A stretch of 64,000 nucleotides of DNA from Neoechinorhynchus agilis (lineage: Eukaryota; Animalia; Acanthocephala): contig CM121342.1 in assembly GCA_051530055.1 (NCBI GenBank), forward strand, positions 14,709,480 to 14,773,479, written 5' to 3'. This document shows, piece by piece, positions 7,370 to 63,100 of the stretch (its first letter is position 1; every line of letters starts with the position of its first letter). The notes under the pieces are model-generated. The model saw only the letters and a program-made list of their open reading frames with translations, was not told the DNA's origin and did no database searches. The translations under genes and the position numbers were made by a program.

Positions 7370-8062
7370 TCATTCAAAAGCGTCGATATCATCAACAAAT
7401 AAAGATTCGTCTACATCAAGATCATCATCTTCATCGAATATGAGATCTTCGCCTTCCTTAATGTCAATATCTTCCTCCTCCTCGATAACCAAATGCTGTT
7501 CAAATAACTGCCTACCGGTCAATCTTCTTTCGAACTCCGCACTTTTGGACGAAGACAGAGACTCAGAACCCTTCAGTTCTGCCAAAAACTGTTCATTCCA
7601 CGCATTGAACGTTTCCGCAGTCACTCTCGTGCCTTCAAACTTAAGCATGGCTTGTCTTTGCTCTTCTTCGGATTTCCGTATCCGCTCTTCTTCCTTTACG
7701 GCTTCGATCTGGAACCTCTTATGAATGAACATATCCTCAATGTCACTGCATATTTGGTAGACCGCTTCGTGTCCCAAATACTTACGACCAATCGTCTCAG
7801 CACTCCGCTTCAGAGCAAAGAATTCGTGATCTTGTAGCAGATCATTTGGGCTCAGACGAATATCGGTTACAATTGCAGCTGATTCAGTCGGATATCCGTC
7901 TGGAAGGACGATATCGATTGAGACATTTCCAGAACCACTGTCCTTTTCATGCACAATAATCGTGAGCTGCGGTTCACCCTTTTCCGAATCAGGTCGCCTC
8001 TTAAAATCAGAATCAAACATGGATTCGAGAACCAATAACTCGTCTACAACTTCAGGTTTCAT
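7370..8062 (-). CDS. RWDD1: RWD domain-containing protein 1 (DFRP2/Gir2), intronless, ~230 aa
   Basis: N-terminal RWD (DELLVLESMF...LPDGYP), DFRP motifs EGTRVTAETFNAW and LTGRQLFE, and an acidic tail. ATG at 8062 follows ...gcttttag|aa. Confidence 0.85.
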   Translation of the reverse strand: MKPEVVDELLVLESMFDSDFKRRPDSEKGEPQLTIIVHEKDSGSGNVSIDIVLPDGYPTESAAIVTDIRLSPNDLLQDHEFFALKRSAETIGRKYLGHEAVYQICSDIEDMFIHKRFQIEAVKEEERIRKSEEEQRQAMLKFEGTRVTAETFNAWNEQFLAELKGSESLSSSKSAEFERRLTGRQLFEQHLVIEEEEDIDIKEGEDLIFDEDDDLDVDESLFVDDIDAFE

Positions 8063-10248: not shown

Positions 10249-11656
10249 ATGATTCCGATCATGAATCCTGGTCGAAGTGAAGAAACCGACGAGGATCCGT
10301 GGTTTCTAATACCTCAATTGTTTTTACCGCAACTTCACAACTTACCGGCAGATGATGGCGATTGGCCGAGTGACCATTCAGATAAATCTTTAGAAACCAC
10401 ATCGTTGGTTGGCGATTGTGCCAATATTGAGAACGTAAACATTGAAATGAATGATGGAATCAGTGGTTTTGGTTTTTCGGAGCAAGTGGTTTTTAATCTA
10501 CTGCAAATGGGAATACGACGACCAACAGCTATTCAAACGCAGATTTGGAACGAGATTCGTACTGGATCACCGAAATCATTTCGCATTCTCGCTCAGGCTT
10601 GGAATGGTGCAGGGAAAACCCTTGCTTATTTGGTACCCATTTTCGGAATTCTCGAACGAGCTCAACAAAAATCCCAAGCATTATGCTTGGTTCCTACGGT
10701 TGAACTGGCTCATCAAATAGCTGATGTTGCGCAATGCGTAGGTAGGAATTTGATCGGTATTTCGATTTATGAGATGTCAGGCAAATGGCCTCCTAAGAAT
10801 CGCGGATCAAAGGAGATTCTGATTAGTACTTCCGGCCGGATTCAAGAAATAATGTCCAAAGAACTGATCGAATGGGACATGGTGAAATGTTTAGTTTTAA
10901 ATGACAAAAAACGGTCTCTTGTGAGAAAAGAGGTCGTTCTTTGTGAGAGATGAGGTCGACATGATGGTAACGATGCCAGGACATTATGAGATTTGTTTTA
11001 AAGTAATGGAAGCTTTACCTGATCAATGTTCCCTTCTATTTGTATCTGCTACGTTCACAGATTATGTGATTGAACGTGTAAAATGTCATGTCAAATATCC
11101 AGACGAATTAAAAGTGTTCGCACTAGACCGAAAAATGTCAATGAATCCTGAGACGACGCATTTGGAAATACCGTGTGCTTCTCGCGACGAAAAGTTGGAA
11201 ATATTGCGCTGCATCTTTGAACGAATTGTCGTTTCCAAATGCGTAATATTTTGCCGAACTCGTCAGTCGGCTCAATTTATTAAATGTGACTTTGAGCAAC
11301 AAGGTGTTAAAGATGTCGGAGTTTTAACTGGAAATAATTCGGTTATAGAGAGAATGGCGGCTTTAAACAAGTTCCGAGAATGTTTATGGAGAGTTCTTAT
11401 TACGACGAATATTTTGTCTAGAGGTATTAATCTAAGCGGCACCAATGTAGTGATCAATTACGATATTCCTACTCTCAATGAGCAGCCCGATCAGGTTGAT
11501 TACGACACATACTTGCATCGAGTTGGACGGGCTGCTCGAATCAACGGAACTGGACTTGTCATTAATCTCTCGGATCACGAAACAGGACTGACTGATCAAC
11601 TTCATGAATATTTTGGATTGAACATCGTCAAAACGAGTGTCTATGAACTTTGTTGA
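10249..11656 (+). CDS. DDX19/DBP5-like DEAD-box RNA helicase (divergent), split by a 49-nt hairpin insert
   Basis: Q motif PTAIQ, AWNGAGKT, PTVELAHQ, STSGRI, DEVD, SAT, IFCRTR, LITTNILSRGIN, VINYDIP...DYDTYLHRVGRAAR. The DYDTYLHR/VINYDIP context is typical of DDX19/25. ATG follows ttgtttcag. Confidence 0.75.
10900..10948 (+). other. Candidate non-canonical hairpin intron in the DDX19-like gene
   Basis: Removing 49 nt restores VKCLVL-DEVD. Arms 10904-10920 and 10928-10944 pair at 16 of 17 positions (2 G-U). Exact junction uncertain by 1-2 nt. Confidence 0.7.
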
Positions 11657-14714: not shown

Positions 14715-15440
14715 TTACGCTGGAAACATTTTCTCAAAATGGCCAGCAAGTAAAGATATGGCAGCAGCATTTTCTCTTCCTTTTGGAATTACTACTTCAG
14801 CAAACCGTTTGGTTGGACGACAGAAGTTATCATGGCACGGTTTAACGTGATCATCGTGCTCATCTAATATTTGATCAAGACTTCTTTGCTCCTTATACTT
14901 CAAAACTCTTCTTGCTAACCAATATTTTCACAACCGAGTATTTGTGAGAACAATGGTAATTAATCGAATATCGGCATCACAGTCGACGAAAATCTTCAAA
15001 TCTAAGAGTTCTCGCAGTATAGGAAAGTACAGCACATACGTTCCCTCGATAATAATGATGTCAGCTTTATCGTTGATTGCTTGTTTTTGTGGCCGAATTG
15101 GACTTCCTTTAATCTCGACAACATCATTCGCTCGTGATTTGAGACGCTTTATGGTATCGCAAAGTTTGACGCAGTCGATGTATTCTGGATAGAATTGCAA
15201 ATAGTTTGAACCGTAACTGGAGTAATCAGGGACGACTTGGGTACTTTCGTTAAAGAACGATTCCATGTGGATCGTTACAATGCAAGGCTTAGCGCCATTC
15301 ATCACTCGATTTTTCAATTCGTCCACAATCTCCCGGACAACAGTAGACTTACCGGCTGCAGATCCACCTGCAACTCCTATGACGTAGGCAGACCTGAGTT
15401 TTGTATGACGAGGACGCGATGAGGCGCGTTCATTCTTCAT
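14715..15440 (-). CDS. Uridine-cytidine kinase-like protein, split by a 45-nt hairpin insert
   Basis: VIGVAGGSAAGKST, IIIEGTYVLY, RELLDLKIFVDCDADIRL + ARRVLK...RSLDQIL...VKP...RPTKRFAEVVIPKG match the UCK family. Confidence 0.8.
14916..14960 (-). other. Candidate non-canonical hairpin intron in the UCK-like gene
   Basis: In-frame 45 nt containing TGA, bounded by TTA...TTA. The 16-nt arms pair at 14 of 16 positions. Removal restores DADIRLARRVL. Confidence 0.72.
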
Positions 15441-20743: not shown

Positions 20744-21806
20744 TCAATGCCACCGTTGTTTGGCTGAACTCAATTGGCGGGACACGTATGTAGAGTGCGG
20801 ATCAAGTTGGATTTGGTCATCCTTTCTAATTTTCTTTGCGCTCGGCAAATCCATCTTACTTTTATCGGTCTTCTTTCTTTTTCTCGTCTGCAAACCTTGT
20901 TTTTTCATTGAAAGTGGTCTATTAACCTATTTTTTTACAAATTTTCAGTAAAGTTCGGTAGAAAAATTAAACCTTGTGCAGTTTATAGTAAAGGCCGCAA
21001 GCGTTGCAGACCGATTCTCCTTGCGAATTTCTTCGCCAAAGCGTTGTTTCATTGGTTCCACAATTGGCGCACTGAATGTTACTTCTAGTGCCATGCTAAA
21101 AAATTTACAATTTAACTGAAAAGATTAAACAAAAAGAAATGCTCACCATTCTCCTGTGAGAACTCTTTTCAGCGAACGGCCCAGCATTACTGGACACTCG
21201 CGGATACATATGCATTTGGGCGCATGGTTCACAGAACACATTTCCGCTTGAATCGTATCTCCAGGATATATTAATCAGATGTGATCCACAAGTACAACAC
21301 GACCTCATTCTTTGGAGATGGGAATTATCGATTGAGACTGAATAGTTATAGAGAGCGAGATTGTTTCCGAACATCAGATCAGGCCTCGCAACTCCATGAG
21401 CGTAAAACTGGTGTTGATGTTGGGATTGAGTCGAATTTTGAGTCGGAAGGATTTGTTGGGTGCTCGGTTGATTGGTTGCAGCAAATCCATAAGAAGCCCT
21501 CGCCATTCCATTCATCATGCTTTGCTGATAGATTGGAGTTTGTAGGCTCGATGTGTTCATTTGTCGTATAATATCCGCTTGTTGAGGCTGGGCGAACGGA
21601 TATTGATGGCCAATATTTGTCTGATGTTGACTGCTGAGAGATGCATTACACGCGTAAGGCGAGTACATTTGTCCATCAAGGGGTCTTGGAGGAACCGTTT
21701 GATAATTTGACGATGGATCATTTGTAAGGCTCATGTCTTTATAAATATTTCCAGAGAAATGACTTTCTTGGGTATCACTTGATTTTAGACTTGTATTTTT
21801 AGTCAT
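20744..21806 (-). CDS. GATA: GATA transcription factor (intact C-finger, degenerate N-finger)
   Basis: [33 protein letters not shown]|[18 protein letters not shown], assembled through two canonical introns. TRKRK suggests the GATA4/5/6 class. Confidence 0.9.
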
Positions 21807-25208: not shown

Positions 25209-27866
25209 TCAGTCCTCCCACGGCTCGCAATGTACAAGGAAAAATATGGATCCAGTCTTAAGATCGTGAATATTCGCTCCACTGTGAGTTATTCGACATT
25301 TAACTGAACTAATTACGCGACCAAAGATGTACACAATTGTTGAGGATTCTTGAAAACATTTAGCGATCTTCCACGATTTTTCATTGTCCAGAAAATGTGG
25401 TAGATCTGCATCAACACAAATCCTGTAACGAAGAGCACTTAGTTGAGTACTCCATTTCGAGTTTTCGATTTGTGAAGAGATGCAACAACGTACAATTGCT
25501 ACCTTTTCATTACTACAGACACGAAATGATTCTATTGGACGGTCTTTCTGCAACTCTCCACTCGCGTCCATTATCATCTTTATGCGTATTTTTGTTTGTT
25601 TTTAAGAACACACACAAAAATGCCACCATATATGCTCAGGATATTGAAAGATTTTAAGCTCGAATATATTTTTAATAAAGTGATTTTTGATTTTCGCCTC
25701 GAATTCGCTCCTTCGCTCCTCATCATCCAGTCGTATGTCTTGTAAAATAGGCGCTATTTTGCCAAAAATGCGTTTGACCTGACAAATTACCATTTTCCTT
25801 CTCTCTGCTTCCTGGAGTATGCCTTCAATTAATCGTGGACATGACAAAAACTGGTCGATGAACTTTACTCGACTTCGCAATCGGTCTCGTGTAGCAACCA
25901 ACATCCTTACATCTGTATCGCACTTATAAATATCATGCTCGCAGTTAATTAGCCATCGTAATTTGGTATTCAATAGACGAATAAGCTTTTCCTTGGATCT
26001 CTGAACGGAGAAATGAACTTCACGAGCATAACTAAGCATTTTCTCAACTTCCGCCAATGCTATCTTATGAAACTTTTCACAAACATCATACATGAATGCG
26101 CTATCTTTCTGAATACTCAAATCGTCCAAAATTCGTTCCATTGACGTTCTAATACTTTGTTCGTATTCTGTAGATCGGTCAAGAAATTTGTGAACATTGT
26201 CTACTCATCCAAGGTCGTTCAAATAGGAGGCTAAACAATTTTTTTTGAATCTTACACTAAAATCCTAATACCTGCATTTCTATTGATACTGGACTTTCTT
26301 TTCAGAAGAAGTTTATAAATCATGTAGGTTCTGCAAGTGTTAAACTCAATTTACTTTATTTTTTGAAGAAAGAATATTGCCCTGAACTGTTGAATGCATC
26401 TTTGATGTGGGTATAATCATTTTTTCGATCGAAGCTATAAAAAAAGAAGAGAAAATACGAGAGTTCCACACAAGGACCTTAAGCAGTTCTTAAGTTAAGC
26501 AACAAATTAATGATAGTACACAAATAGGAAGACAAAAATTTTCTAATTTTCGTTTATGTCAATAAATAAAGCGGCTCATGGTTTTAAAAAAATATCTACG
26601 CTTACTTGAGACGACCTTCGATTTTTATACGGCCACTTGAAGTTCGGTCAACTCATCTTCTATATTATCCAACTTCTTGTCAGGTGATGTATTTACTCCA
26701 TGAAGTAAATCCTTAATTGACTTAAATCGATCGGTGATTTGACTTTGACTAATCTAAAATTACACTTTGGTTAGTCTATTCAGTATAAGCAGTTCGATTA
26801 TTAAAAACATTTGACTCGATGATCCGTTTCACAGGAGCAGATACGTAATCGAACGGGGATAAGAAAACAAAATTATGTTTCGAAGTAGCGCCATAGAATC
26901 GTATATAACACTTTAAGGGACGAGTACCAGAAATGTTAGTTTTTATTTAGCGGAGCTCACCTCTTTTAAACATTTTGAAAACGTTCCTGAATCTGACAGT
27001 TTCAAATATTCCGTCAAATCTATTTCAGTCGTTGACTTGAACTAAATTCTAATAGCATGAAACAACTTGAGTTCCATTGTCCAATACTTACATGACTGCT
27101 GATTAAGTCAAATGCATTTTCAAAAGATTCATCCAGCGATAAAGCTTCCCTGACAGATTTGGGAAATTTTTGTGATTTTAATTGCTTAACTACTAGAAGA
27201 ACGTCTTTCTCCTCCTTCAATTCCACATCATCTTCTAACTCCGAAGTCATTGTCTCTACCAAACCCAAACATGAATCTATAAAATCATCAAGGTTCGCTA
27301 AGGCAGTCATCCACCCTTGTGTGTGAAACCGATTCCACCTTTAAGACTACCCCAGGAAGATCCAATTTCCTTTAATTGTAGATGCTGATCGCGCAGAAGG
27401 CTATCGCATTCGTTTGAAAGTATGTAAATATCCTCTCGAATTCCACACATAATCTCATATCTGTACTTCACACAGTTAACTGATGGCTTTTCATTCAAGC
27501 AGTGCCGTATTTCACGCTCGAAGACGTGCTGTTCACAAAGCGACACTTCGCTTTCTAATTCATTCAAGTTGAGAAGGTTCGTTGAAAACAAGAAAATCGG
27601 ATTGTCGTCCGTTCCCGCTCCAAGTTCACATATCTTGTCTTCGTCCAACACCAAATAACCACCACTAATCAACAGTACTTGTTGATCTCTTTGTATGCAG
27701 GTATCGTTTTCCAATAGCGATTTTATGTGCTTAATACTATGAGGAATTGGAGTAAAAATAAACTTTAGATAAGTTCGTACTTTGTAAATATAAGATTAGA
27801 ACCGTCTCCAGGTTCAAAGTCGTATGAGTGCATAATCCCTCTGATAACCTCGAAAATATAAAGCAT
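25209..27866 (-). CDS. RB1CC1: RB1CC1/FIP200 (Atg11/Atg17-like autophagy scaffold), compact
   Basis: MLYIFEV start, QQVLLISGG...GAGTDDNPIFLFS, DQHLQ..GW.TALANLDD, KEKLIRLLNTKLRW, and an Atg11 C-terminal claw-like domain. Canonical introns plus three hairpin-type interruptions; the exon model around 26760-26910 is uncertain. Confidence 0.8.
26202..26627 (-). other. 426-nt TIR/hairpin insert in RB1CC1 flanked by GTA repeats, with an internal GT-AG segment
   Basis: GCC GTA [TAA...GGATGA GTA] GAC. The ends pair (ATCGAAGGTCGT/ACGACCTTGGAT, 11 of 12). Confidence 0.6.
27320..27372 (-). other. Candidate 53-nt hairpin intron in RB1CC1
   Basis: Frameshift inside DQHLQ-x-QGW with pairing ends GAAATT/GGTTTC and TTCC/GGAA. 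A weak GT-AG alternative adds 6 aa. Confidence 0.45.
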
Positions 27867-50581: not shown

Positions 50582-51826
50582 ATGAATATTGACGCGTTCG
50601 CAGACCACCCATCCACGGTTTCTGCCAAGTTTTCTAGTCCGATACCAGACGGATCTGATGGTTCTAAGGAAATCTTAAGTAATTTCGAAAAGACATATCA
50701 AAAGTTTGAGGACATGGGTCTTCAGGATCCTTTGCTTCGTGGAATATTTGCTCACGGTTTCGAGCATCCGAGTGCCATTCAGCAGCGTGCCATTGTGCCC
50801 ATCATCGAAGGCCACGATGTCATAGCTCAGGCACAGTCTGGAACGGGAAAGACCGCTACTTATGCCGTCGCTGCCATTCAACGCCTGGACTGCCGCAATA
50901 GTGACTGCCAAGTACTTATCCTTGCTCCCACTCGTGAGTTGGCTCGCCAGATTCAAAAGGTTGTCGTGGCTCTGGGCAACTACATGAAGGTGAAATGCCA
51001 CGCTTGTACCGGTGGTACCAGTATTGATCTAGATATGACAACTCTTAGAAATGGTGTCCATATTGTGGTCGGTACGCCCGGTCGTGTTTTAGACATGATA
51101 AGACGTCAAGCGTTTCGCACTAGTTCGATCATGATGTTCATTTTGGATGAAGCAGATGAAATGTTAAGTAAAGGATTCACCGATCAAATCTATGATGTCT
51201 TTAAAAATCTCGGAGAAGATACACAAGTTGTGTTGATGAGTGCGACGATGCCAGATGCCGTTCTTGAAGTAACTGATCGATTTATGCGAGATCCAGTTAC
51301 GATATTAGTTAAGAAGGAAGAGCTTACTCTTGAGGGTATTAAACAATTTTACGTTGATGTCCAACAAGACGCTAACAAACTTATGACTTTATGCGATCTG
51401 TACGCTAGTCTTCAGGTCACTCAATCAGTGATCTTTTGTAATACTCGCAAGGTCGTCGAATGGCTGCAGCGTGAAATGGAAGAGCGCCAGCATCCAGTTG
51501 CTGCCATTCATGGCGATATGCATCAAGATGAACGAAACCGAATTATGCAGGGATTTCTGGAAGGTCAAAGTCGTGTTTTGCTTACTACCGATCTTTTATC
51601 ACGTGGAATCGACGTCCAACAAGTCTCTTTGGTCATAAATTTCGATCTTCCTAAAGATCGTGAAAGCTATATTCATCGAATTGGTCGAGGAGGACGATTT
51701 GGTCGAAAGGGAGTCGCTATAAACTTTGTCACGAACGAGGATAAAGAGTATCTGAAAGGAATCGAAGAGTTCTATGGTACTTCCATCGAAGAAATGCCAA
51801 TGAACGTTCACGAATTGCTCGTATGA
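50582..51826 (+). CDS. EIF4A: Eukaryotic initiation factor 4A (DEAD-box), intronless CDS, 414 aa
   Basis: [60 protein letters not shown]4A3 is not excluded, but the sequence is closer to eIF4A1/2. Confidence 0.9.
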
Positions 51827-52045: not shown

Positions 52046-52734
52046 TTATTTTGGAATGAGATAAAAATTACGCGAAAGTTCGTCACTCAAGTACTCGGAC
52101 GTTTCGGCTATTTTCTCTGTTGGAAACTCAGGTAAGTCCATTAGCCATTTAACAAAGTCTTCTCTCAACAATCCTTTAGTAACGTTCTCAAAAATACTAT
52201 ATTTGTGCACAGGCTTTCTCAAGTCAACTGGTCGTTGATTTTCGATTGGACTCCTATTCTTTGGCTTATTGGATTTTAATTGGACATTCCTTGGAGACGT
52301 ATGAAAAACCTTTAGATCTGCGAATGAAGGAATTGTGTCCAGAGTCGACCGATGCCCTTCTTCATATTCATCGTACGCACTTTGAGGACTTGTTATACTG
52401 TACGTATAAAGATAATCTTGTTCGCTTTTAGATTTAGTGCATAATTTCAGAACCAAAACCAATTGTGAGATTATGCGTTCTTGAACTCGAATCCTCCGCT
52501 GTTCGTGTCTTACGTTTGTCGCTACAAGTTGATTCTTGATTTACTTTTTTAGGCTCCTTCAAACGCACGACCGTGACTGGATTACTGTCTTCTTCGAGCT
52601 CGGAAAATTCTTCACCACACATTGTATTCAATCGCATAAATGCGTTCTTATTGCCTTGTCGAATTCGCATAGAAGGACGGTTGAAAGATCGTTTAGGCGG
52701 TTTATTCGGAATTGCTTTTGGTAGCCTCGTAACT
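52046..52734 (-). CDS. Unknown protein; two ORFs joined across a 40-nt hairpin; probably extends further 5' (towards ~53010)
   Basis: ttttag|GAG CAA CCA... reads through 52434-52670 and shifts +1 into 52046-52462 exactly at an 11-bp stem. No family recognised. Confidence 0.5.
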
Positions 52735-54004: not shown

Positions 54005-54312
54005 ATACACAAATGAAACGATAAATTGTAGTGTATGATTATTTAATAATATGTAATAAGCGCATTGTAGGATGGTTTTTCGTGTAGAAAAATTAAAATA
54101 GGTTAAGTTTGTAGTTGACGTGCTTTTTGAACAAAATTCAGAAAAGTAAAATTCTCAAAAGAAAACATTTGTAATTATTTTGTTTAAAATAGCGACTAAA
54201 CAGTCTAGATGTGGAAAACAGCTTTGAGGTAAGCAAGTTTCTTGTTTTCATCTACACATTCGGTATTTTTGGCACACACACAATGCTATTCTCAATAAAA
54301 GCACCCATCACG

Positions 54313-55226: not shown

Positions 55227-57108
55227 TCATGATTCTGGTTGCTGCTGTAGTTGTCGACCGTTGCCGCCACAGCAGCAACATTTTATTCGCTGATATTTCA
55301 GTGAACATTGCTTGTGACAAAGAGTTGAACAATCTTTAAAAAGATTCAGGTTAGAGCGTTGATGGATAAAGAAAGCTTACAAATGCAAGTAATGACGTCT
55401 TCCTCAAATGGAAAGATCAAAGTTTCCTGCTTGCACATTGAACATTGCATGCCGGCTGATGAGCAACTGGAGCACGAAAGGACGTGTTTTGTGAATATTT
55501 TAATGATCGAATCGATTATTATCTGATGTTTTCCTGATTTAACCTACGACGAACATGAGATTTTCGAGAGCTAACGGCAGCTATACCTGGAACAGATCAA
55601 ACAATGAATAAAGATGCGACTGGTTGTAGACGTGTGAGCCAGAAAGAGAATCAAGAACACTTGTAAGTCTAATGCGAAGAAATTATAAAGGAATGTAAAT
55701 CAAATTTGCCTATGAGCGATTGCTATTTTTTAAATAGACGCTGAACAGCTCTAAAAATAATTTTATTGTAATTTTTAATTAGATGTTTAGAACATCCCTT
55801 GACTTTTTCCTTTACGCATACAGTTAACTGATGTATTGCATCAGGGAAGCCAATAAAATTAACACCCTGAACCCTCCGGATCCTCAGATACCTCCCGGGG
55901 AGACGTAAAGGAAAAAGCCGAGTAAAGGATGATCTAAACACCTCATTAAAAAATAACCGGCTTGCTAGAAGACACATAAATCGATTAAAAAATTATCAGA
56001 TTTTAGAGGCAATGATTTTCAATCTTGGGGTCAAGACCCACACTTTTAAAAGTATATTCAATATTTAGGGAATAATTAAAGCAACGAAACAATGTGTCCA
56101 TGGAAAAAGATATTGTATACAATATTTCTTTTATCGCCTCTGTTTTGTAAGTTGAACTTGAACCGCCAAAATAATTGCACTAAGAACAGGAATGACATTT
56201 TTCTAAAAAGTATATTTTGGGTTTCAAACTTGGAGTCGTGACCACAAAACAAAAGGTCGAAAACTGTTATTTTAGAGGCAGTACCAAAATGGGGCAAAAA
56301 GGTGATCGCTCAAATAACCACTAGACAATCATACTGTTCATTTGAAGCATTTTTACAAGATCCAATGAGCCGTTTTAGAATTCGAAGACGTTGTCGCAAT
56401 TCCTTCACAAGGCGAATCTCGCTTACTGTCTTCTCTAACTCTGGATTCACCATATCCAAATCAATGAAAGGTTGGTTTAGGTTTTTGTCAAGAACCGACA
56501 CAGCTCGTCGACTCAATTGATATTTGTGTCCAAAATCCCAATTAGAAATGATTTTCTCCGGTAAGTAGTGTCTAACGTCGTGCATGCAAGCCGGACAGAA
56601 TTGCTTTCCGAAATATTCGCAAATCTGCCAGTTACGACGATTCATTGAGATAGCCCCACAACCGGCACATCGTTCATTGTGGACAATGGAAGGACGTGTT
56701 AGAATGAGTTGAGGTCTTGGAGGAGCCCAATCCTCGATACCACGTATAAAATGCTCTCCTAACTTAGAATCGCGTTCATACACTTCGATCTCATAAACTG
56801 TATCCGGAAATTGAGATCAAAGATTAATCATGACACTTGAGCTCATTGACCGGTGGTAAATCGTTTTCGTAAGTTAAGCTGTTAAGTAGCGAAATCGCAG
56901 TATTCGTAGCACTGCTGCTAGAGGGCGAAGGTTCATTCCTTTTCGCCATGGAACGCTCAATACGCATCGTAGAATTGGTCAGTTCAAAGGCTTCAATGAG
57001 CATATCGCAATAATCAATATGGGCTTTTTCATTCGCCGACGAAGGGCACGTTGAAAGGTCGCGATCCAGGATAAAATCCCGAATCCGTTTTAATGGAGGA
57101 TCCGGCAT
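55227..57108 (-). CDS. Rubicon-family protein (Rubicon homology / zf-RING_9 domain)
   Basis: NEKAHIDYCDMLIEAFE, EDWAPPRPQLIL, CAGCG...CEYFGKQFCPACM, PEKIISNWDF, HLYSLFDL, HVLSCSSC...CSMC...LIFPF...CI|YCSTLCHKQC. Includes a 666-nt canonical intron (55669-56334). RUBCN vs RUBCNL unresolved. Confidence 0.8.
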
Positions 57109-57739
57109 CTGCAATAAACAAACACGATATTTTAGAATTCACAATTTTACAGAAATAACCTTAAACGACCGACTTCCATAAATAGGGCATTAATCTAACC
57201 GATTTTTTTGGCCGATTTCGCTTATTCAGCCATTACTAACTTTGTTGATATTGACCAAATCGTATTTTATCATTTTAAGCATGGTTAGCCGGTAACTTTG
57301 TTCTGTTTTAAAATGTCGCCCTTACCACGGCTGTAAATTTTATTCGTATTTGTGACGAATTCAATATGGAGAATGACGCAATTTCGTCGGAAGAATCCAT
57401 GTTTCTGTGGCGAACTTTTAGTAATGTTTTTATTGATTTTTCTTATGCGTAGGTCATTGATTTAAAATGAAATCGTTTCTTGTTTATATTTACTAAAAGT
57501 CACAGAATTTTATTTAGCAGTCATATCAAATCCGCATTACCCATATGTTATGATTGTTCGGCAGCTTCCTTGATGGCAATGGCATTGCCGCGTTGGATCG
57601 CCCCGTTGATTCGCTGCGACATTGTATTGTATGCAACGTTACTTTCCTACGTTGCACCATAGGTATAAGCTTGTCAAATAGAATTAGACTCCGCAAGAGA
57701 TCTAAAATACACGACAGCAGTCCTGTTATGCGGGCAATT

Positions 57740-59800
57740 CGCGTCTCTTAAAATCAGGTCATCGTATGTACGACAGTTCCCTTTGCCCTTAAGATACAAT
57801 GTCGTTGGCTTCCAGAAAAGGAACTGTTCACGACCTGTGGGCAAGATGCCTCGGACCGAATTATATTGCCCGTGAACTGCAGTCGTCTGCGGCGCAAATA
57901 TTCACTGGGCGGTTGGACTCCGGCTCTCTTATACAGTGCTTTGTTGGTCACTTTATCTTACCATCTTACCATCTGACCTTGAACGCCGCACGTAAGAGAG
58001 ATGAATGATTTTGGTCCAACTGCCTCGTCGCCGTTGGTGACAGTGTCCAGGTCTCTGCATTGTAGTAGAGAATGCTCTCAATTAGAGCCCTAAACAGCTT
58101 CGAACGGAGTTCGTCTGGCAAAGACACTGTCAAACAGTGGTTTAAGTTGCCCCATTGCTCTCCAAGCTATAGCTCTCCTTCGGCTGACATCCGCACTCAC
58201 CTCAGGAACGACAGCTCCCAGATAGACATACCGCTCTATCTGTTTTAATTGCTCAACGCCATTCGGCCCTTAGCCAGAGACTGTATGCACGACATGCGGA
58301 ATCGTCAAGAATTCCGTCTTTTTCGAGTTGATGGTCATACCAATCATACTCGCCCTCTCGCACGGTCTATTTAGCATGCGTTGCGCTCCTTCGACTGTTG
58401 AGGACATCAATACGATGTCGTCGGCATATGCCATGTAGGAGGCGCGTATCTCAGGATACCTGCGACCTCTTTTCCTCAACAAAAGAAATCCATCTTCATC
58501 ATTCGGTAGTGCCTATATCATTACCCAATCAAGCACCAAGATGAAGAGGAAAGGAGCCAATGTGTCGCCCTGCAGAATACCTGAAGTGGTGGAAAAGTAT
58601 TCTGTCAAACCGTCAGTTGTCTTTACGGCGGAAATTGTGTTTTTATATAATGCTATAACGGATGTGACAATGATTGGCTGCACTCCATACTCCTTTAAGA
58701 TACCGCCAATCATCGTTCGATTTACCGAATCGAAAGCTCGACGGAAATCAACAAATACCAGCGTCACACCCGTTTGATGAATTCGTGCCTCCTCGAAGAT
58801 CCTCCTCAAAGCCAATATGTGCTCTGTGGTGCATCGACCTTTCCTGAAGCCGTTCTGTTCAATTCTTAGAAACGGTTCGAGGATTTGCTGAATTCGGTGT
58901 CTCAAAATGCTGCTGAAAAGTTTTCCTGTCGAGCAGCATTTCTTGGGGATCATTGATAAATGCGCCGTTTGCCGGATTTGAGGTACTGAGCCACCATTCA
59001 TTATCGGTATGATTTTTCTGGCAATGGATTCAAATTTCAGTACCTCTGCCATTTTCGCATCTGGGCCTGATGCACCATTTTCGCCGCAGCGATCGCTTCC
59101 TTCACGGAAATCGGTCCAGTGAAGTATGCCTCAGTGCTTGGGACGATTGTGCCTTTTGGAAGTGCGGGACTCCCTTCCAAAGACGATAATGGCGAATTGA
59201 GAATTTCCGCAAAATAATTTGCGAATCTCTTTTTCTGATTTCCGGGGAGAGACCTTCAATCAAAGTTGGCTGTCTTTGGGATCTTCCTGTGAGAGTGTTT
59301 ATCGCTCCCCATGCTAAGGAGGTACGAACGAAACCTTCCTTATATGCGATCCCGCGAACTGCATCCTCTATCGAAGCCTTTTGCTTTTCATTATAGAGGT
59401 TGGCAAGTTCAAGACTTGTAATGCGAGCCTCAGATCGTTTTCCTCTTTTTATAAGAGTTTTGATCTACTCAGCCATTGCCATAAATTCACAGTCCTCCTG
59501 CTATATAACCTTTGCAGCTTTTATACGCCTCATTTTTGGAGCAGCTCCGGCGGCCAGACAGCTACTGATAGTAGCCTGTCAACGCGGAGTCGATGTGCCG
59601 CTCCACTTGGTGATGCGGCAGTGAACAGGAGCAACAAAATCCACCAGTGCAACGGGAAAAAGCGAGGGCGTCGTAGCTCTCGCCGACGACTTGAGCGTCG
59701 AAATGAGCGAAACTGTCGCCGGAGGCAACGAAAGCGCCAGTTGAAGCTCATCGCCGTGGTGGGTACGGACTGTTCAGGTGGCGCTGACAGCCGTGAGCCC
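57740..59800 (-). mobile_element. Decayed RTE-like non-LTR retrotransposon (RT domain, 5'-truncated)
   Basis: QNGFRKGRCTTEHILALRRIFEE, FVDFRRAFDSVNR, GILQGDTLAPFLFIL, YADDIVL, YLRRRRLQFTGNIIR. Frameshifted. Confidence 0.85.
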
Positions 59801-59809
59801 TTTGGCCCA

Positions 59810-60830
59810 GCTATTTCAGATAGAAGAGCATTACGAATCTGCTGCGCTGCGAGGGGAAGCTGCTGGAGCGCATATCGCCGGTGGCATATTTCAGCATCTT
59901 TCCCAGTCGGGAAATGAATCAATCGGCTTCTTTTGCGAGGCATCCCAGTGTTTCCACCGCAATCGGAATGAATATATATTGATGCCCATCGAACGGGGAG
60001 TACTTATGCCGATTCTTTTCCTCGCTGAAGCTGGCGACTGCTCGCGCTTTCGAGGTGGCGTCCCGTAAGTGGGATGCTGCGAGCGTGTTGGACAAGTAAA
60101 ATCTCAAACCAATATTTTCCCGGAGCACCATGGAAGGAGAGTTGCGCCATCAGGGCGTTTACCGTCGTTCCGGGAAAGTCCGACTGGTTCGAGTCGAGCG
60201 GGAAAACCGGTCGTTGAGAGGGCTTCCTTAATTATGCGGTTGACTGCTGAGTGCTGTGCGTGGCGAGCATTTGAACGCTTGCAGTCAAGGCCGTGAGTTC
60301 CCAACCTGTTCACCGTCTCACGGCACCGACATGTATATGAGCCTGAGAAATCTATGTCCAACCGAAATCCCACAGCGACGGTGATGGCTTGGTCATCCAG
60401 CCTCCTGCCAACAGCCGTGACCGGGAAAGCCTTCAAGAAGTCGCTGGAGTGTGGAGCTGAGACTGCCAGGAGACGAGCTCTATCGGTGGGAGACGAGCGT
60501 GAGTTGCGAAGCTGCTGATAATACGCAGTGTGGAGCAAGGTAGTCCAACGTTTTTGGGAGCTTGTTTCCGTTGGAACGACCTGCCCGAACACTGACGTCC
60601 ATTGAGCGTGCGCTTCGATCTGTTCAGGTGGTGCAGGTCTGAAGAGACCGAAATCGATGACGAAAAGGCAGGAATTGCTACTTCAGTGGCACTCTAGATG
60701 CCAAGACCGCCGAATCGAATGGGAAGGATCGCCTGTTTCCATTCTGTGTCGAACAGTCGTAGGTTTAGGACTTCTGACAGGGTTGATCGAACGCAGTCGT
60801 CGAAAAGAATTTATGGACACGAAAGTCCGC
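59810..60830 (-). mobile_element. 3' half of a CRE-clade retrotransposon (RLE endonuclease)
   Basis: LPIRFGGLGI, RARLLAVSAPHSSDFLKAFP, CRCRETVNRLGTHGLDC, RHAQHSAVN, LEPVGLSRNDGKRPDG, FIPIAVETLG. Confidence 0.85.
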
Positions 60831-60954: not shown

Positions 60955-63100
60955 ATGAGTTCGATTCTGGATAAGATTGATTCTATTGAACAGGAGGTAC
61001 AGCCTAATTTTTATTTTACACAACTCTTTTGTAACTGCCGAAATATAAGATTGCTCGTACGCAAAAGAACAAAGCTACTGAGCGCCACTTGGGTCTTCTT
61101 AAAGCTCAATTGGCAAAGCTAAAGAGGGAACTGATTGAACCGAAAGGAGGTGGCGGTAAAGGCGAAGGATTTGACGTTGCCAGCGCCGGCGATGCTCGAG
61201 TTGGATTTGTAGGTATGGCTATTGTTTGTTCATGTTTATGGCGTAAATTATTTCCCAAAAAGAACTTTTATTTTTTAGTTTTGATACAATCACCACCGTC
61301 CGCAAAATTGGAGCTTCTCTCCTTCCTCGGCTGTCGCTATCACTCCAGCAGCATTGCCTTGTTGTACTGCGAGCGAGATATTTTGTCGCAGGAATACACC
61401 TGCTCGTGCGTCGCCGGTCGTTTCTCTCAATTTCTTCGAGCGATCCTGGAGCAGAGTGAGTGCCGACTCCGAAGGCGACAAAATAGAGGGCCCTTGCTAA
61501 TTCTCTATATTTTAGTACCTTCCTCCCTTCCGCTGCACTGGTTGCACCTCCAGCGATTTCGAGAGAGTAGGGAATGTTGCTTACTTCGAGGGTGTCCACA
61601 CGCGTGGCGTCCCAGAAAAGGCATTTGCCCTCCCGCCACGGCAGCCGAGGAAGGAGAGAAGCTAAGATTTTGCGGACGGTGGTGATTGTATCAGAATTAA
61701 CAAATAAACGTTCTTTGTGGCGTAAAAATTAAAAGAATTTATCTATTCTAATATTTTGGAGACATTTAATTTTTACGCCATAATCAAACATGAACAATTC
61801 TATCTTCAAACAAACATTTTTATTTTGGTTGTTGAACGCATATTGATTTCCCGTAGGTTTCCCATCGGTTGGAAAGTCTACGATTCTGACAAATCTTTCT
61901 GGAGTATACTCTGAAGTGGCTGCATACGAATTCACAACGCTCACGACCATTCCAGGAATGATCCGTTACAAAGGAGCCAAAATTCAGTTGCTTGATTTGC
62001 CTGGTATTATAGAAGGAGCTAAGGACGGAAAAGGACGTGGACGTCAAGTTATTGGAGGTGAGTGGAGATTTAGAGTATTTCTTACAGTTTTTGTCTCGAT
62101 TTGAACAGTTGCAAGAACATGTAGTCTTATATTCCTAGTCCTTGATGTCATGAAACCACTAACGCATAAACGAATTATTGAAAAGGAACTGGAAGGATAC
62201 GGAATTCGGTTAAATAAACAACCACCGAATATATTCTTTAAAAAGAAAGAGAAAGGCGGTGTTAACTTCCAGAGTATGGTATTTTTGTTCTCTTTGGCGG
62301 ATTAACTTGTTTATTATTATTGTCTAGGATACCAATTGTACTTTGGACGTGGAAACCGTTAAAAGTGTCCTAGCTGAGTACAAAATTCACAACGCTGATG
62401 TTTTTGTGAAATGTAATGCAGAAATCGATGACCTCATTGATGTAGCTAAGAATTCTCGTTGATTTTTGCGCGATCTGTCCCACTTTCGCATTAAATATAG
62501 TTATAGTGCTTTTTTAAGTCCGAGCCTCCCAAATGAGAATTGTAAAGCGTAATCGAGGGTAACCGACGATATATCCCTGCTATTTACGTGCTTAATAAAA
62601 TCGACCAGATTTCAATAGAGGTTTGCTATAGAAATTTAATTTCTATTTACTTTATCGAAGCAGGAATTGGACATTATATCTAAAATCCCACATTGTGTCC
62701 CGATATCGGCGCACAATAAATGGAATTTCGACGACCTTCTTGAACTGATGTGGAAAGATTTAAATCTCGTCAGAGTGTAAAGCTTAAACTTTGTCTATCA
62801 TTTCCAAAATTGCATTTCCTTTAGGTACACTAAACCAAAAGGTCAATTGCCCGATTACGGCAATCCCGTGGTTTTAAAAGCGGACGCATGCACGGTTGAG
62901 CACTTTTGCAACAAAATCCATCGACAAATGATTAAACAATTCAAATCGTAAGTGGTTCCTCGAGCTGCTGTGATACATTCGAATCGATTTGTTTATTTAG
63001 AGCACTCGTGTGGGGGAATTCTGCTAAGTTTAATCCTCAAAGTGTGGGAAAGGATCACGTTCTTATGGACGAAGATGTAGTTCAAGTTATTAAAAAATGA
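60955..63100 (+). CDS. DRG1: Developmentally regulated GTP-binding protein 1
   Basis: [14 protein letters not shown]|[18 protein letters not shown]..., [54 protein letters not shown]. Seven canonical introns plus one 107-nt hairpin insert. Confidence 0.95.
61282..61693. mobile_element. Two CRE 3' ends in inverted orientation inside DRG1 intron 2
   Basis: 61282-61336 and 61639-61693 are ~55-bp inverted copies of each other. Confidence 0.8.
62445..62551 (+). other. Candidate non-canonical hairpin/TIR intron in DRG1
   Basis: GAT GTA [gctaagaattctc...gagaattgtaaagc GTA] ATC GAG GGT AAC. Removal restores DDLIDVIEGNR. Confidence 0.72.

Follow-up and report, generated by a model that had tools for sequence, protein, structure and literature searches.

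A hairpin insert in motif II of a DDX19/Dbp5-like helicase gene of Neoechinorhynchus agilis: a candidate structure-defined, non-GT-AG intron

We analysed 64,000 nucleotides (nt) of DNA from the acanthocephalan Neoechinorhynchus agilis (assembly GCA_051530055.1, contig CM121342.1, positions 14,709,480 to 14,773,479 of the forward strand), called the window below and numbered from its first letter. In this window, the gene for a DDX19/Dbp5-like DEAD-box helicase is split at its motif II by a 49-nt insert that folds into a hairpin. Exact removal of the insert gave the best match to the helicase family among all frame-restoring deletions scored, a comparable insert was found in a uridine-cytidine kinase (UCK) gene, and the ordinary introns nearby folded no better than shuffled sequence. 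On these grounds we read the insert as a structure-defined, non-GT-AG intron that would be excised at the base of its hairpin, and we put the probability of this reading at about 0.5.

Results

The helicase gene (10249-11656, forward strand) consists of two open reading frames (ORFs), listed as exons in Table 1, and is otherwise intronless. Its translation contains the Q motif and motifs I, Ia, Ib, II (DExD), III (SAT) and IV-VI, together with the Pfam domains DEAD and Helicase_C. Among solved structures the best match was human DDX19B (E 4e-56), followed by yeast Dbp5, and the DDX19-like identity proposed in the original prediction is thereby borne out; identity to any homolog found was about 31% at most. 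The public model of the gene, KAL7673310.1 (99% protein match), is spliced at a GT-AG pair at 10882-10930. It belongs to an annotation of the 46-Mb genome made by BRAKER with canonical splice sites only, the genome having been sequenced with Illumina, Oxford Nanopore (ONT) and HiFi reads (PMC12690905).

The upstream frame ends its homologous part with ...EWDMVKCLVL at 10899, enters the insert and reaches a TGA stop at 10951-10953, and the downstream frame opens with DEVDMM at 10949. The insert itself is built of two 17-nt arms around a 7-nt loop, with 16 of 17 positions paired, two of them as G.U, and a single A.C mismatch; an extra outer pair (10902-10946) lengthens the stem. Its ends can be placed as AA..AG (10899-10947) or AA..GA (10900-10948), both placements being correct and giving one and the same product. 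The two frames, the arms and loop, the count of pairs and the possible ends agree with what had been read from the sequence beforehand. The 49 nt alone folded at -15.4 kcal/mol, compared with -7.7 +/- 2.0 for 200 dinucleotide shuffles (z -3.85, 0/200). Within a 71-nt context the z of the same hairpin was merely -1.14, so the fold signal belongs to the insert only. Hairpins with at least 17 pairs number nine in 73 kb, about three times the 2.9 expected from shuffles, and roughly half of them sit at candidate coding junctions. That such a hairpin lies exactly on an insert defined by homology is therefore not due to chance.

All frame-restoring deletions of 5-110 nt, with 1222 distinct products, were scored against a profile that we built from 119 Dbp5/DDX19 homologs. 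The top score, 296.1 bits, belonged to deletion of 10899-10947 or 10900-10948, with the product ...EWDMVKCLVLDEVDMM... and the junction peptide ...CLVLDEVDMMVTMPGHYEICFK. This product carries the motif II sequence VKCLVL-DEVD and aligned without gaps to human DDX19B. The annotated GT-AG intron ranked 64th of the 1222 with 284.2 bits, 11.9 bits below exact removal, and its junction reads ...SFFVR/DEVDMM.... At the six positions before the DEAD box the family follows the pattern [ILMV]-K-[VI]-[LF]-V-L. VKCLVL fits all six, whereas RSFFVR departs at four: none of the 119 homologs has R at -6, S at -5, F at -4 or R at -1. The earlier objection that the GT-AG option places an arginine at a normally hydrophobic position thus holds, this residue lying directly before the Walker B aspartate, and the proposed comparison of the alternative translations with the family profile came out in favour of exact removal. 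The accompanying statement that 10882-10930 is the sole GT-AG option has to be corrected: 19 in-frame GT-AG pairs exist, and this one is the sole pair that preserves length. As defined by homology, the segment does not combine a GT or GC start with an AG end; GT-AG fits only the shifted segment 10882-10930, which yields a non-family peptide. AlphaFold confidence over residues 211-220 was 94 for the VKCLVL form and 85 for the RSFFVR form, and 181 against 147 residues reached a predicted local distance difference test (pLDDT) score of at least 90; both values are weak indicators. The VKCLVL isoform had no exact match in a collection of 15 billion proteins, which contained no transcript-derived protein of N. 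agilis.

The chief alternative is that the annotation is right. A palindromic 49-nt insertion would then have been rescued by an ordinary spliceosomal GT-AG intron at 10882-10930, the old VKCLVL codons would have become intronic, and the 3' arm of the hairpin would be translated as RSFFVR; the hairpin would be a relic of the insertion's origin, or at most would modulate the acceptor site. In its ends and its 49-nt length the segment resembles the genome's canonical introns of 37-53 nt, AlphaFold still forms the strand with RSFFVR at pLDDT 85, and a similar half-hairpin solution exists for a candidate at 52.4 kb, as do hairpin-containing ones in a family of secreted-protein genes described below. 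In addition to the profile scores and the four unmatched positions, this explanation requires that the intronic VKCLVL remained a perfect family match by chance and that the acceptor works from inside the stem in a purine-rich context, and it leaves the parallel UCK case without a workable GT-AG solution. We consider it less likely than exact removal, although it deserves more weight than any other alternative discussed here.

A second helicase copy, KAL7674905.1 on CM121341.1 (copy B, the window's gene being copy A), retains the insert at a length of 48 nt. Compared with copy A, its insert lacks one nt at the 5' edge and has A>G in the loop and G>A two bases from the 3' end, so that 3 of 15 non-stem bases and 0 of 34 stem bases have changed (rough p 0.025). 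The genes show a synonymous divergence (dS) of 0.072 and a nonsynonymous-to-synonymous ratio (dN/dS) of 0.33 over 1356 sites; 22 of 452 amino acids differ, and the helicase motifs are all intact. Because both copies are under purifying selection while carrying the insert, it must be neutralised somehow, and plain pseudogenes are unlikely judging from these sequences. The ends of the segment are AA..GA/AG in copy A and AT..AA or AA..AA in copy B, and this lack of conservation argues for a structural rather than a dinucleotide signal. The splice sites of the annotated intron persist in copy B as well, where the sole coding change under that model is a conservative R>K. Adenosine-to-inosine editing that creates GU..AG ends was considered and rejected, as it fits copy B (AT..AA) alone and neither copy A nor UCK.

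The strongest parallel was found in the UCK gene (14715-15440, reverse strand), which is a single open frame save for a 45-nt hairpin. A TTA repeat at this insert leaves the junction ambiguous by 3 nt. In the alignment with human UCK2 the gap falls exactly at the insert, and RLARRV[LM], in the context DxDxRLARRV[LM], was present in 13 of the 14 closest homologs where the motif was found. Against a profile of the closest eukaryote-like homologs, exact removal scored 184.5 bits, a 39-nt alternative 180.1 bits, and the public model (P0124), which contains a 24-nt GT-AG 'intron', 171.7 bits. No GT/GC-AG pair in the gene preserves the motif; such pairs give only micro-introns of 21-27 nt or loss of the conserved ARRVL. 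UCK is apparently single-copy, being the sole N. agilis protein among the 120 best matches. For both helicase and UCK, the homologs returned included no orthologs from other acanthocephalans or rotifers, and hence gave no cross-species covariation.

The codons at these junctions bear on ribosome hopping, that is, programmed translational bypassing of the T4 gene 60 or Magnusiomyces 'byp' type with the hairpin as take-off signal. The gap in T4 gene 60 is 50 nt, which the gaps of 41-49 nt with their hairpins resemble, and in UCK the codon before the insert equals the insert's last codon (TTA/TTA). In the helicase, by contrast, no landing codon matches the take-off codon TTA, the insert's last codon before GAT being AGA, and the take-off site is followed by AAT and not by a stop. 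Bypassing is, to our knowledge, unheard of in eukaryotic cytosolic translation, and we regard it as the least probable of the explanations considered.

We then compared these inserts with ordinary introns. GT-AG introns, about 18 in all, predominate in the DNA examined and occur in UBL5 (one), DRG1 (seven), an ABC transporter gene at locus L002 (about eight) and a GATA gene (one). They are 37-53 nt long with two exceptions, DRG1 intron 2 (about 640 nt) and one ABC-transporter intron (about 270 nt). At the 3' end, 12 of 14 local canonical introns have a T-rich sequence followed by CAG or TAG; the helicase insert ends in ...TTTGTGAGA, which is no pyrimidine-rich YAG and is not of little structure either. 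Folding of the 14 canonical introns gave -0.6 to -9.8 kcal/mol with z from +1.75 to -1.5, no better than shuffles, compared with -9.7 to -17.7 kcal/mol and z from -2.5 to -7.6 for eight hairpin inserts. Non-canonical candidates account for about 3-6 of some 24 intron positions and are set apart by structure. With DRG1 intron 5 as an uncertain exception, all observed hairpin inserts sit in genes without other introns; the neighbouring DRG1 and ABC transporter genes have 8-9 short introns each, and several conserved genes are intron-free (an eIF4A-like helicase, an RWD/DFRP protein, an ADI-family protein and TFIIA; window 50582-51826, forward, and 7370-8062, reverse; locus L003 1032-2681 and 4329-4808).

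Three paralogous secreted-protein genes carry hairpins at one shared site, with lengths of 43 nt in P1, 48 nt in P2 and 41 nt in P3. The stem is maintained between P1/P3 and P2, where four G.U and two compensatory changes leave 51 of 51 cells paired. For P2 the folding energy was -13.9 kcal/mol in the sense and -2.4 kcal/mol in the antisense orientation, its stem forming in the sense strand only, through G.U pairs. Sense-only folding and the pattern of changes point to a structure at the RNA level. A protein search with this family returned two proteins only. P1, P2 and P3 count as candidates and not as proof of exact excision, since canonical GT-AG introns could contain the hairpin: upstream donors are available in each copy, each different (AAA/GTGAGT, ATT/GTTTGT and AAA/GTTGAA). 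The P family and the 52.4-kb candidate thus show conservation of the hairpin, not exactness of excision.

The G.U-dependent stem of P2 in sense RNA speaks against removal at the DNA level, in which the insert would be a ciliate-like internal eliminated sequence (IES), excised somatically, with the assembly representing germline DNA. The non-GT-AG ends, a size like that of short IESs and the TTA direct repeat flanking the UCK junction would suit such a process. The boundaries share no TA or TTAA consensus, the sequenced DNA came from pooled whole worms (PMC12690905), and we found no published report of programmed DNA elimination in Acanthocephala; we judge this explanation very improbable. A further explanation is that the insert is an unrepaired disabling mutation and that helicase and UCK are young pseudogenes in a gene-losing parasite genome. 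About 45% of metazoan BUSCO genes are absent from N. agilis (PMC12690905), and the insert does bring a frameshift and a stop. Against this stand the single lesion per affected gene, always a hairpin, the selection on the two insert-bearing helicase copies, the three diverged P-family paralogs that retain both the insert and open exons, and the apparently single-copy state of UCK. We find this improbable.

Further candidates are listed in Table 1. In DRG1 intron 5, the canonical GT-AG solution removes residues that align with Rbg1; the region is variable and the boundary ambiguous. Three attempts to extend the list were discarded: DRG1 intron 4, thought to be an off-by-one non-GT-AG case, is in fact canonical (donor ATG/GTATTT), a hairpin in the GATA gene (21126-21174) overlaps an ordinary GTGAGC...TTTTTTAG intron, and a brute-force census of joinable ORFs was too noisy for use.

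Table 1. Features of the helicase gene, its insert and the further candidates, in window coordinates (+ forward, - reverse strand)
Feature	Position	Strand	Remarks
Exon 1, DDX19/Dbp5-like helicase	10249-10899	+	Q motif, motifs I, Ia, Ib; C-terminal end ...EWDMVKCLVL; from translation and DDX19B/Dbp5 matches
Exon 2, helicase	10949-11656	+	starts with DEVDMM (motif II); SAT, motifs IV-VI, terminal stop; from translation and DDX19B alignment
49-nt hairpin insert	10900-10948 (equivalently 10899-10947)	+	exact removal fuses VKCLVL to DEVD
Hairpin 5' arm, ACAAAAAACGGTCTCTT	10904-10920	+	identical in paralog
Hairpin loop, 7 nt, GTGAGAA	10921-10927	+	A>G in paralog
Hairpin 3' arm, AAGAGGTCGTTCTTTGT	10928-10944	+	identical in paralog
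Two 18-nt direct repeats, 22 nt apart, TTGTGAGAAAAGAGGTCG / TTGTGAGAGATGAGGTCG	10919-10958	+	family D1; 16/18 identical
Alternative 49-nt GT-AG intron of the public model	10882-10930	+	product EWDM/RSFFVR/DEVD; fold z -0.20
8-mer TTGTGAGA/TCTCACAA	10919-10926, 10941-10948, 14942-14949, 52463-52470		
45-nt hairpin insert, UCK gene	14916-14960	-	between DADIRL and ARRVLK; in-frame TGA; z -3.33
Candidate 43-nt hairpin insert, secreted-protein paralog P1	53335-53377	+	after C-Y-F-H; z -6.13
Candidate 48-nt homologous hairpin insert, paralog P2	54475-54522	+	z -3.75
Candidate 43-nt hairpin between two ORFs of a gene without known relatives	52435-52477	-	z -3.0; GT-AG alternative with donor in loop
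Weak candidate, hairpin of about 43 nt	56784-56826	-	between a 96-amino-acid ORF and a frame with a Rubicon-homology domain; z -1.67
Possible longer member, DRG1 intron 5	62442-62548	+	terminal stem of 10+3 base pairs joins the ends; the junction that keeps V-I-E is not GT-AG

Origin of the inserts and surrounding DNA

The inserts may have begun as small palindromic DNA insertions, either from a mobile element or as a product of snap-back repair. The second of the two 18-nt direct repeats at the helicase insert straddles the junction with exon 2, and the repeats suggest that part of the 3' arm derived from junction duplication or templated repair. Within the 64 kb there are four occurrences of the 8-mer TTGTGAGA/TCTCACAA, all of them in hairpin inserts (two in the helicase, one in UCK and one at 52.4 kb), and was not present in the other loci examined. 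Its sharing hints at a common origin of three independent inserts. Both helicase copies of the 8-mer are mutated in copy B, so it is probably not essential. When the inserts were used to look for a repeat family in about 106 kb, none of them proved to be present in repeated copies, and Rfam gave no family match.

Strong hairpins were also seen elsewhere: in intergenic DNA (window 54037-54077; L002 13705-13767 and 9566-9609, one of the L002 hairpins being a 63-nt palindrome paired at 26 of 27 positions) and inside a predicted reading frame (25335-25378). As these lie beyond the coding junctions examined, a palindrome-making process may act genome-wide. On the reverse strand at 25572-25631, a 60-nt GU-rich hairpin with 20 of 22 pairs has a lone in-frame TAA in its loop; it is flanked in the same reading frame by a 179-amino-acid frame (weak ATG17-like match) and a 122-amino-acid frame, and it may be another such insert.

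The window also contains a 20-kb satellite array (28559-48572) made of about 107 copies of a 186-nt unit with 91-94% identity and a 372-nt higher-order period, which explains why base composition is flat from 30 to 48 kb. Another tandem array, rich in AT (L002 2449-4046), has hairpin-containing units every ~114 nt and adjoins a P-type ATPase gene. Just upstream of DRG1, a block at 57500-60600 with 47-48% GC, compared with about 35% elsewhere, contains fragmented reverse-transcriptase frames (Pfam RVT_1) and is probably a decayed retrotransposon of the non-long-terminal-repeat type. DRG1 intron 2 (61215-61857) has more than ten times the usual length, and its long open frames on both strands suggest that an element was inserted there.

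Discussion

We favour excision of the 49-nt segment from the sense transcript. The RNA would be cut about 2-4 nt beyond the base of the stem and Leu217 (TTA) joined to Asp218 (GAT), so that motif II reads VKCLVL-DEVD. The helix would set the two junctions side by side, with cleavage and ligation taking place a few unpaired nucleotides outside the stem; in the better-defined cases the unpaired nucleotides at both ends sum to about 3-5. The removing activity might be a spliceosome with relaxed end recognition, or else a nuclease and a ligase of a separate system. Support for precise excision at non-GT-AG ends is only indirect and is given by the UCK case, by purifying selection on the insert-bearing paralogs and by the contrast with unstructured canonical introns.

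Several points weigh against this reading. The annotated intron has the modal length here, and its donor (ATG/GTGAAA) and AAG acceptor are within the range of real introns. The paralog data are equally compatible with it, given that its GT and AG persist, and the P-family inserts and the 52.4-kb candidate are also explicable by canonical introns overlapping the hairpin. The junction dinucleotides differ between paralogs and between cases, leaving the stem as the only evident recognition signal. Only two helicase copies could be compared; about 1.3 changes were expected neutrally in the VKCLVL codons and none was observed, which carries little weight. For UCK, a profile dominated by bacteria did not separate exact removal from the 39-nt alternative. 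Finally, we know of no animal enzyme that removes such a segment.

Beyond the single gene, N. agilis may possess a second, structure-guided form of intron removal, in which palindromic insertions of ~41-49 nt would be cut at the base of the hairpin whatever their terminal dinucleotides, as might longer introns whose ends pair. We offer this tentatively, at somewhat less than even odds. If true, the process would be functionally convergent with the nonconventional introns of euglenozoans, small palindromic elements could colonise even the catalytic motifs of essential genes, and GT-AG-only annotation would mis-model every such gene. The public models were indeed odd at all hairpin-insert genes examined. 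In the helicase, RSFFVR replaces the motif II strand, and UCK has its 24-nt 'intron'; the P1 model (P0122; 53179-54004, forward) starts at an internal ATG and loses the signal-peptide exon, and the model of the Rubicon-homology gene (55227-57114, reverse) starts downstream of the hairpin and omits the upstream 96-amino-acid ORF. Part of the low BUSCO completeness, or 'gene loss', may therefore stem from annotation.

No published report of non-canonical introns in Acanthocephala or Rotifera was found, and excision, if confirmed, would be the first such case in these groups. The question bears on how palindromic insertions survive within coding sequence, and hence on intron birth. With its compact genome, RNA-seq data from 74 individuals (PRJNA1223661) and a Trinity transcriptome (Zenodo 10.5281/zenodo.17199078), N. 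agilis offers a tractable route to the mechanism of recognition and removal.

Comparison with known systems

The introns of XBP1/HAC1 (removed by IRE1 and RtcB) and bulge-helix-bulge introns are likewise short, structure-defined segments without GT-AG signals that are rejoined exactly, the XBP1 intron being 23-26 nt long. The XBP1 type requires twin stem-loops with 7-nt CNGNNGN loops that are cleaved, whereas the helicase insert forms a single hairpin with the loop GUGAGAA and has its junctions outside the stem. Bulge-helix-bulge introns need two 3-nt bulges 4 base pairs apart and pairing between exon and intron; no such bulges were predicted at the insert, whose junctions lie symmetrically outside one stem.

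Introns derived from introners or miniature inverted-repeat transposable elements (MITEs) resemble the inserts in being inverted-repeat insertions into exons, in the direct repeat at the junction (TTA, in UCK) and in the 8-mer shared by three inserts. Introners carry or create GT-AG ends and exist in many near-identical copies, and MITE or introner families typically show terminal inverted repeats and target-site duplications; in about 106 kb no repeated copies of the inserts were found. Mirtrons and other intronic hairpins are similar in shape and size (about 45-60 nt), but mirtrons have canonical GT-AG ends and stems of about 22 base pairs, compared with 17-19 pairs and non-GT-AG ends at the insert; just 15 microRNAs are annotated in N. 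agilis. With regard to U12-type AT-AC introns, neither the 5' consensus /ATATCCTT nor the branch site TCCTTAAC is present in 10890-10960.

In animals, larvacean tunicates (Fritillaria borealis, Oikopleura) provide an example of introns that escape GT/AG in a compact, fast-evolving genome (PMC13326754). About 95% of these introns are non-canonical and are removed by a U2-type spliceosome with altered U2AF and small nuclear RNA modification; an introner or transposon origin has been discussed, and no hairpin requirement is described (PMC13326754). In N. agilis, by contrast, the non-canonical candidates are a minority and are marked by structure.

The nonconventional introns of euglenids and diplonemids coexist with conventional ones and arise at new positions (PMC6221363, PMC4770533, PMC12501133). 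They have variable non-GT-AG borders and a stem that joins the junctions, and both features are found in the helicase and UCK inserts. The code described for Euglena, 5'-N3-CDG ... CH'G-N5-6 followed by a purine at the exon start (PMC12501133), is absent from all inserts: positions 4-6 are GAC in the helicase, ACC in UCK, GCA in P1 and CTT in P2, a CAG/CTG pair with the prescribed spacing is missing, and only the purine start of the next exon fits. Compared with euglenozoan introns, the N. agilis inserts are very short (41-49 nt) and consist almost entirely of one hairpin; they are not members of that family. In the literature found, structure-defined non-GT-AG introns are described from euglenozoans only, and non-GT-AG spliceosomal introns from larvacean tunicates. 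The nonconventional introns of euglenids and diplonemids are the nearest functional analogue of the N. agilis inserts.

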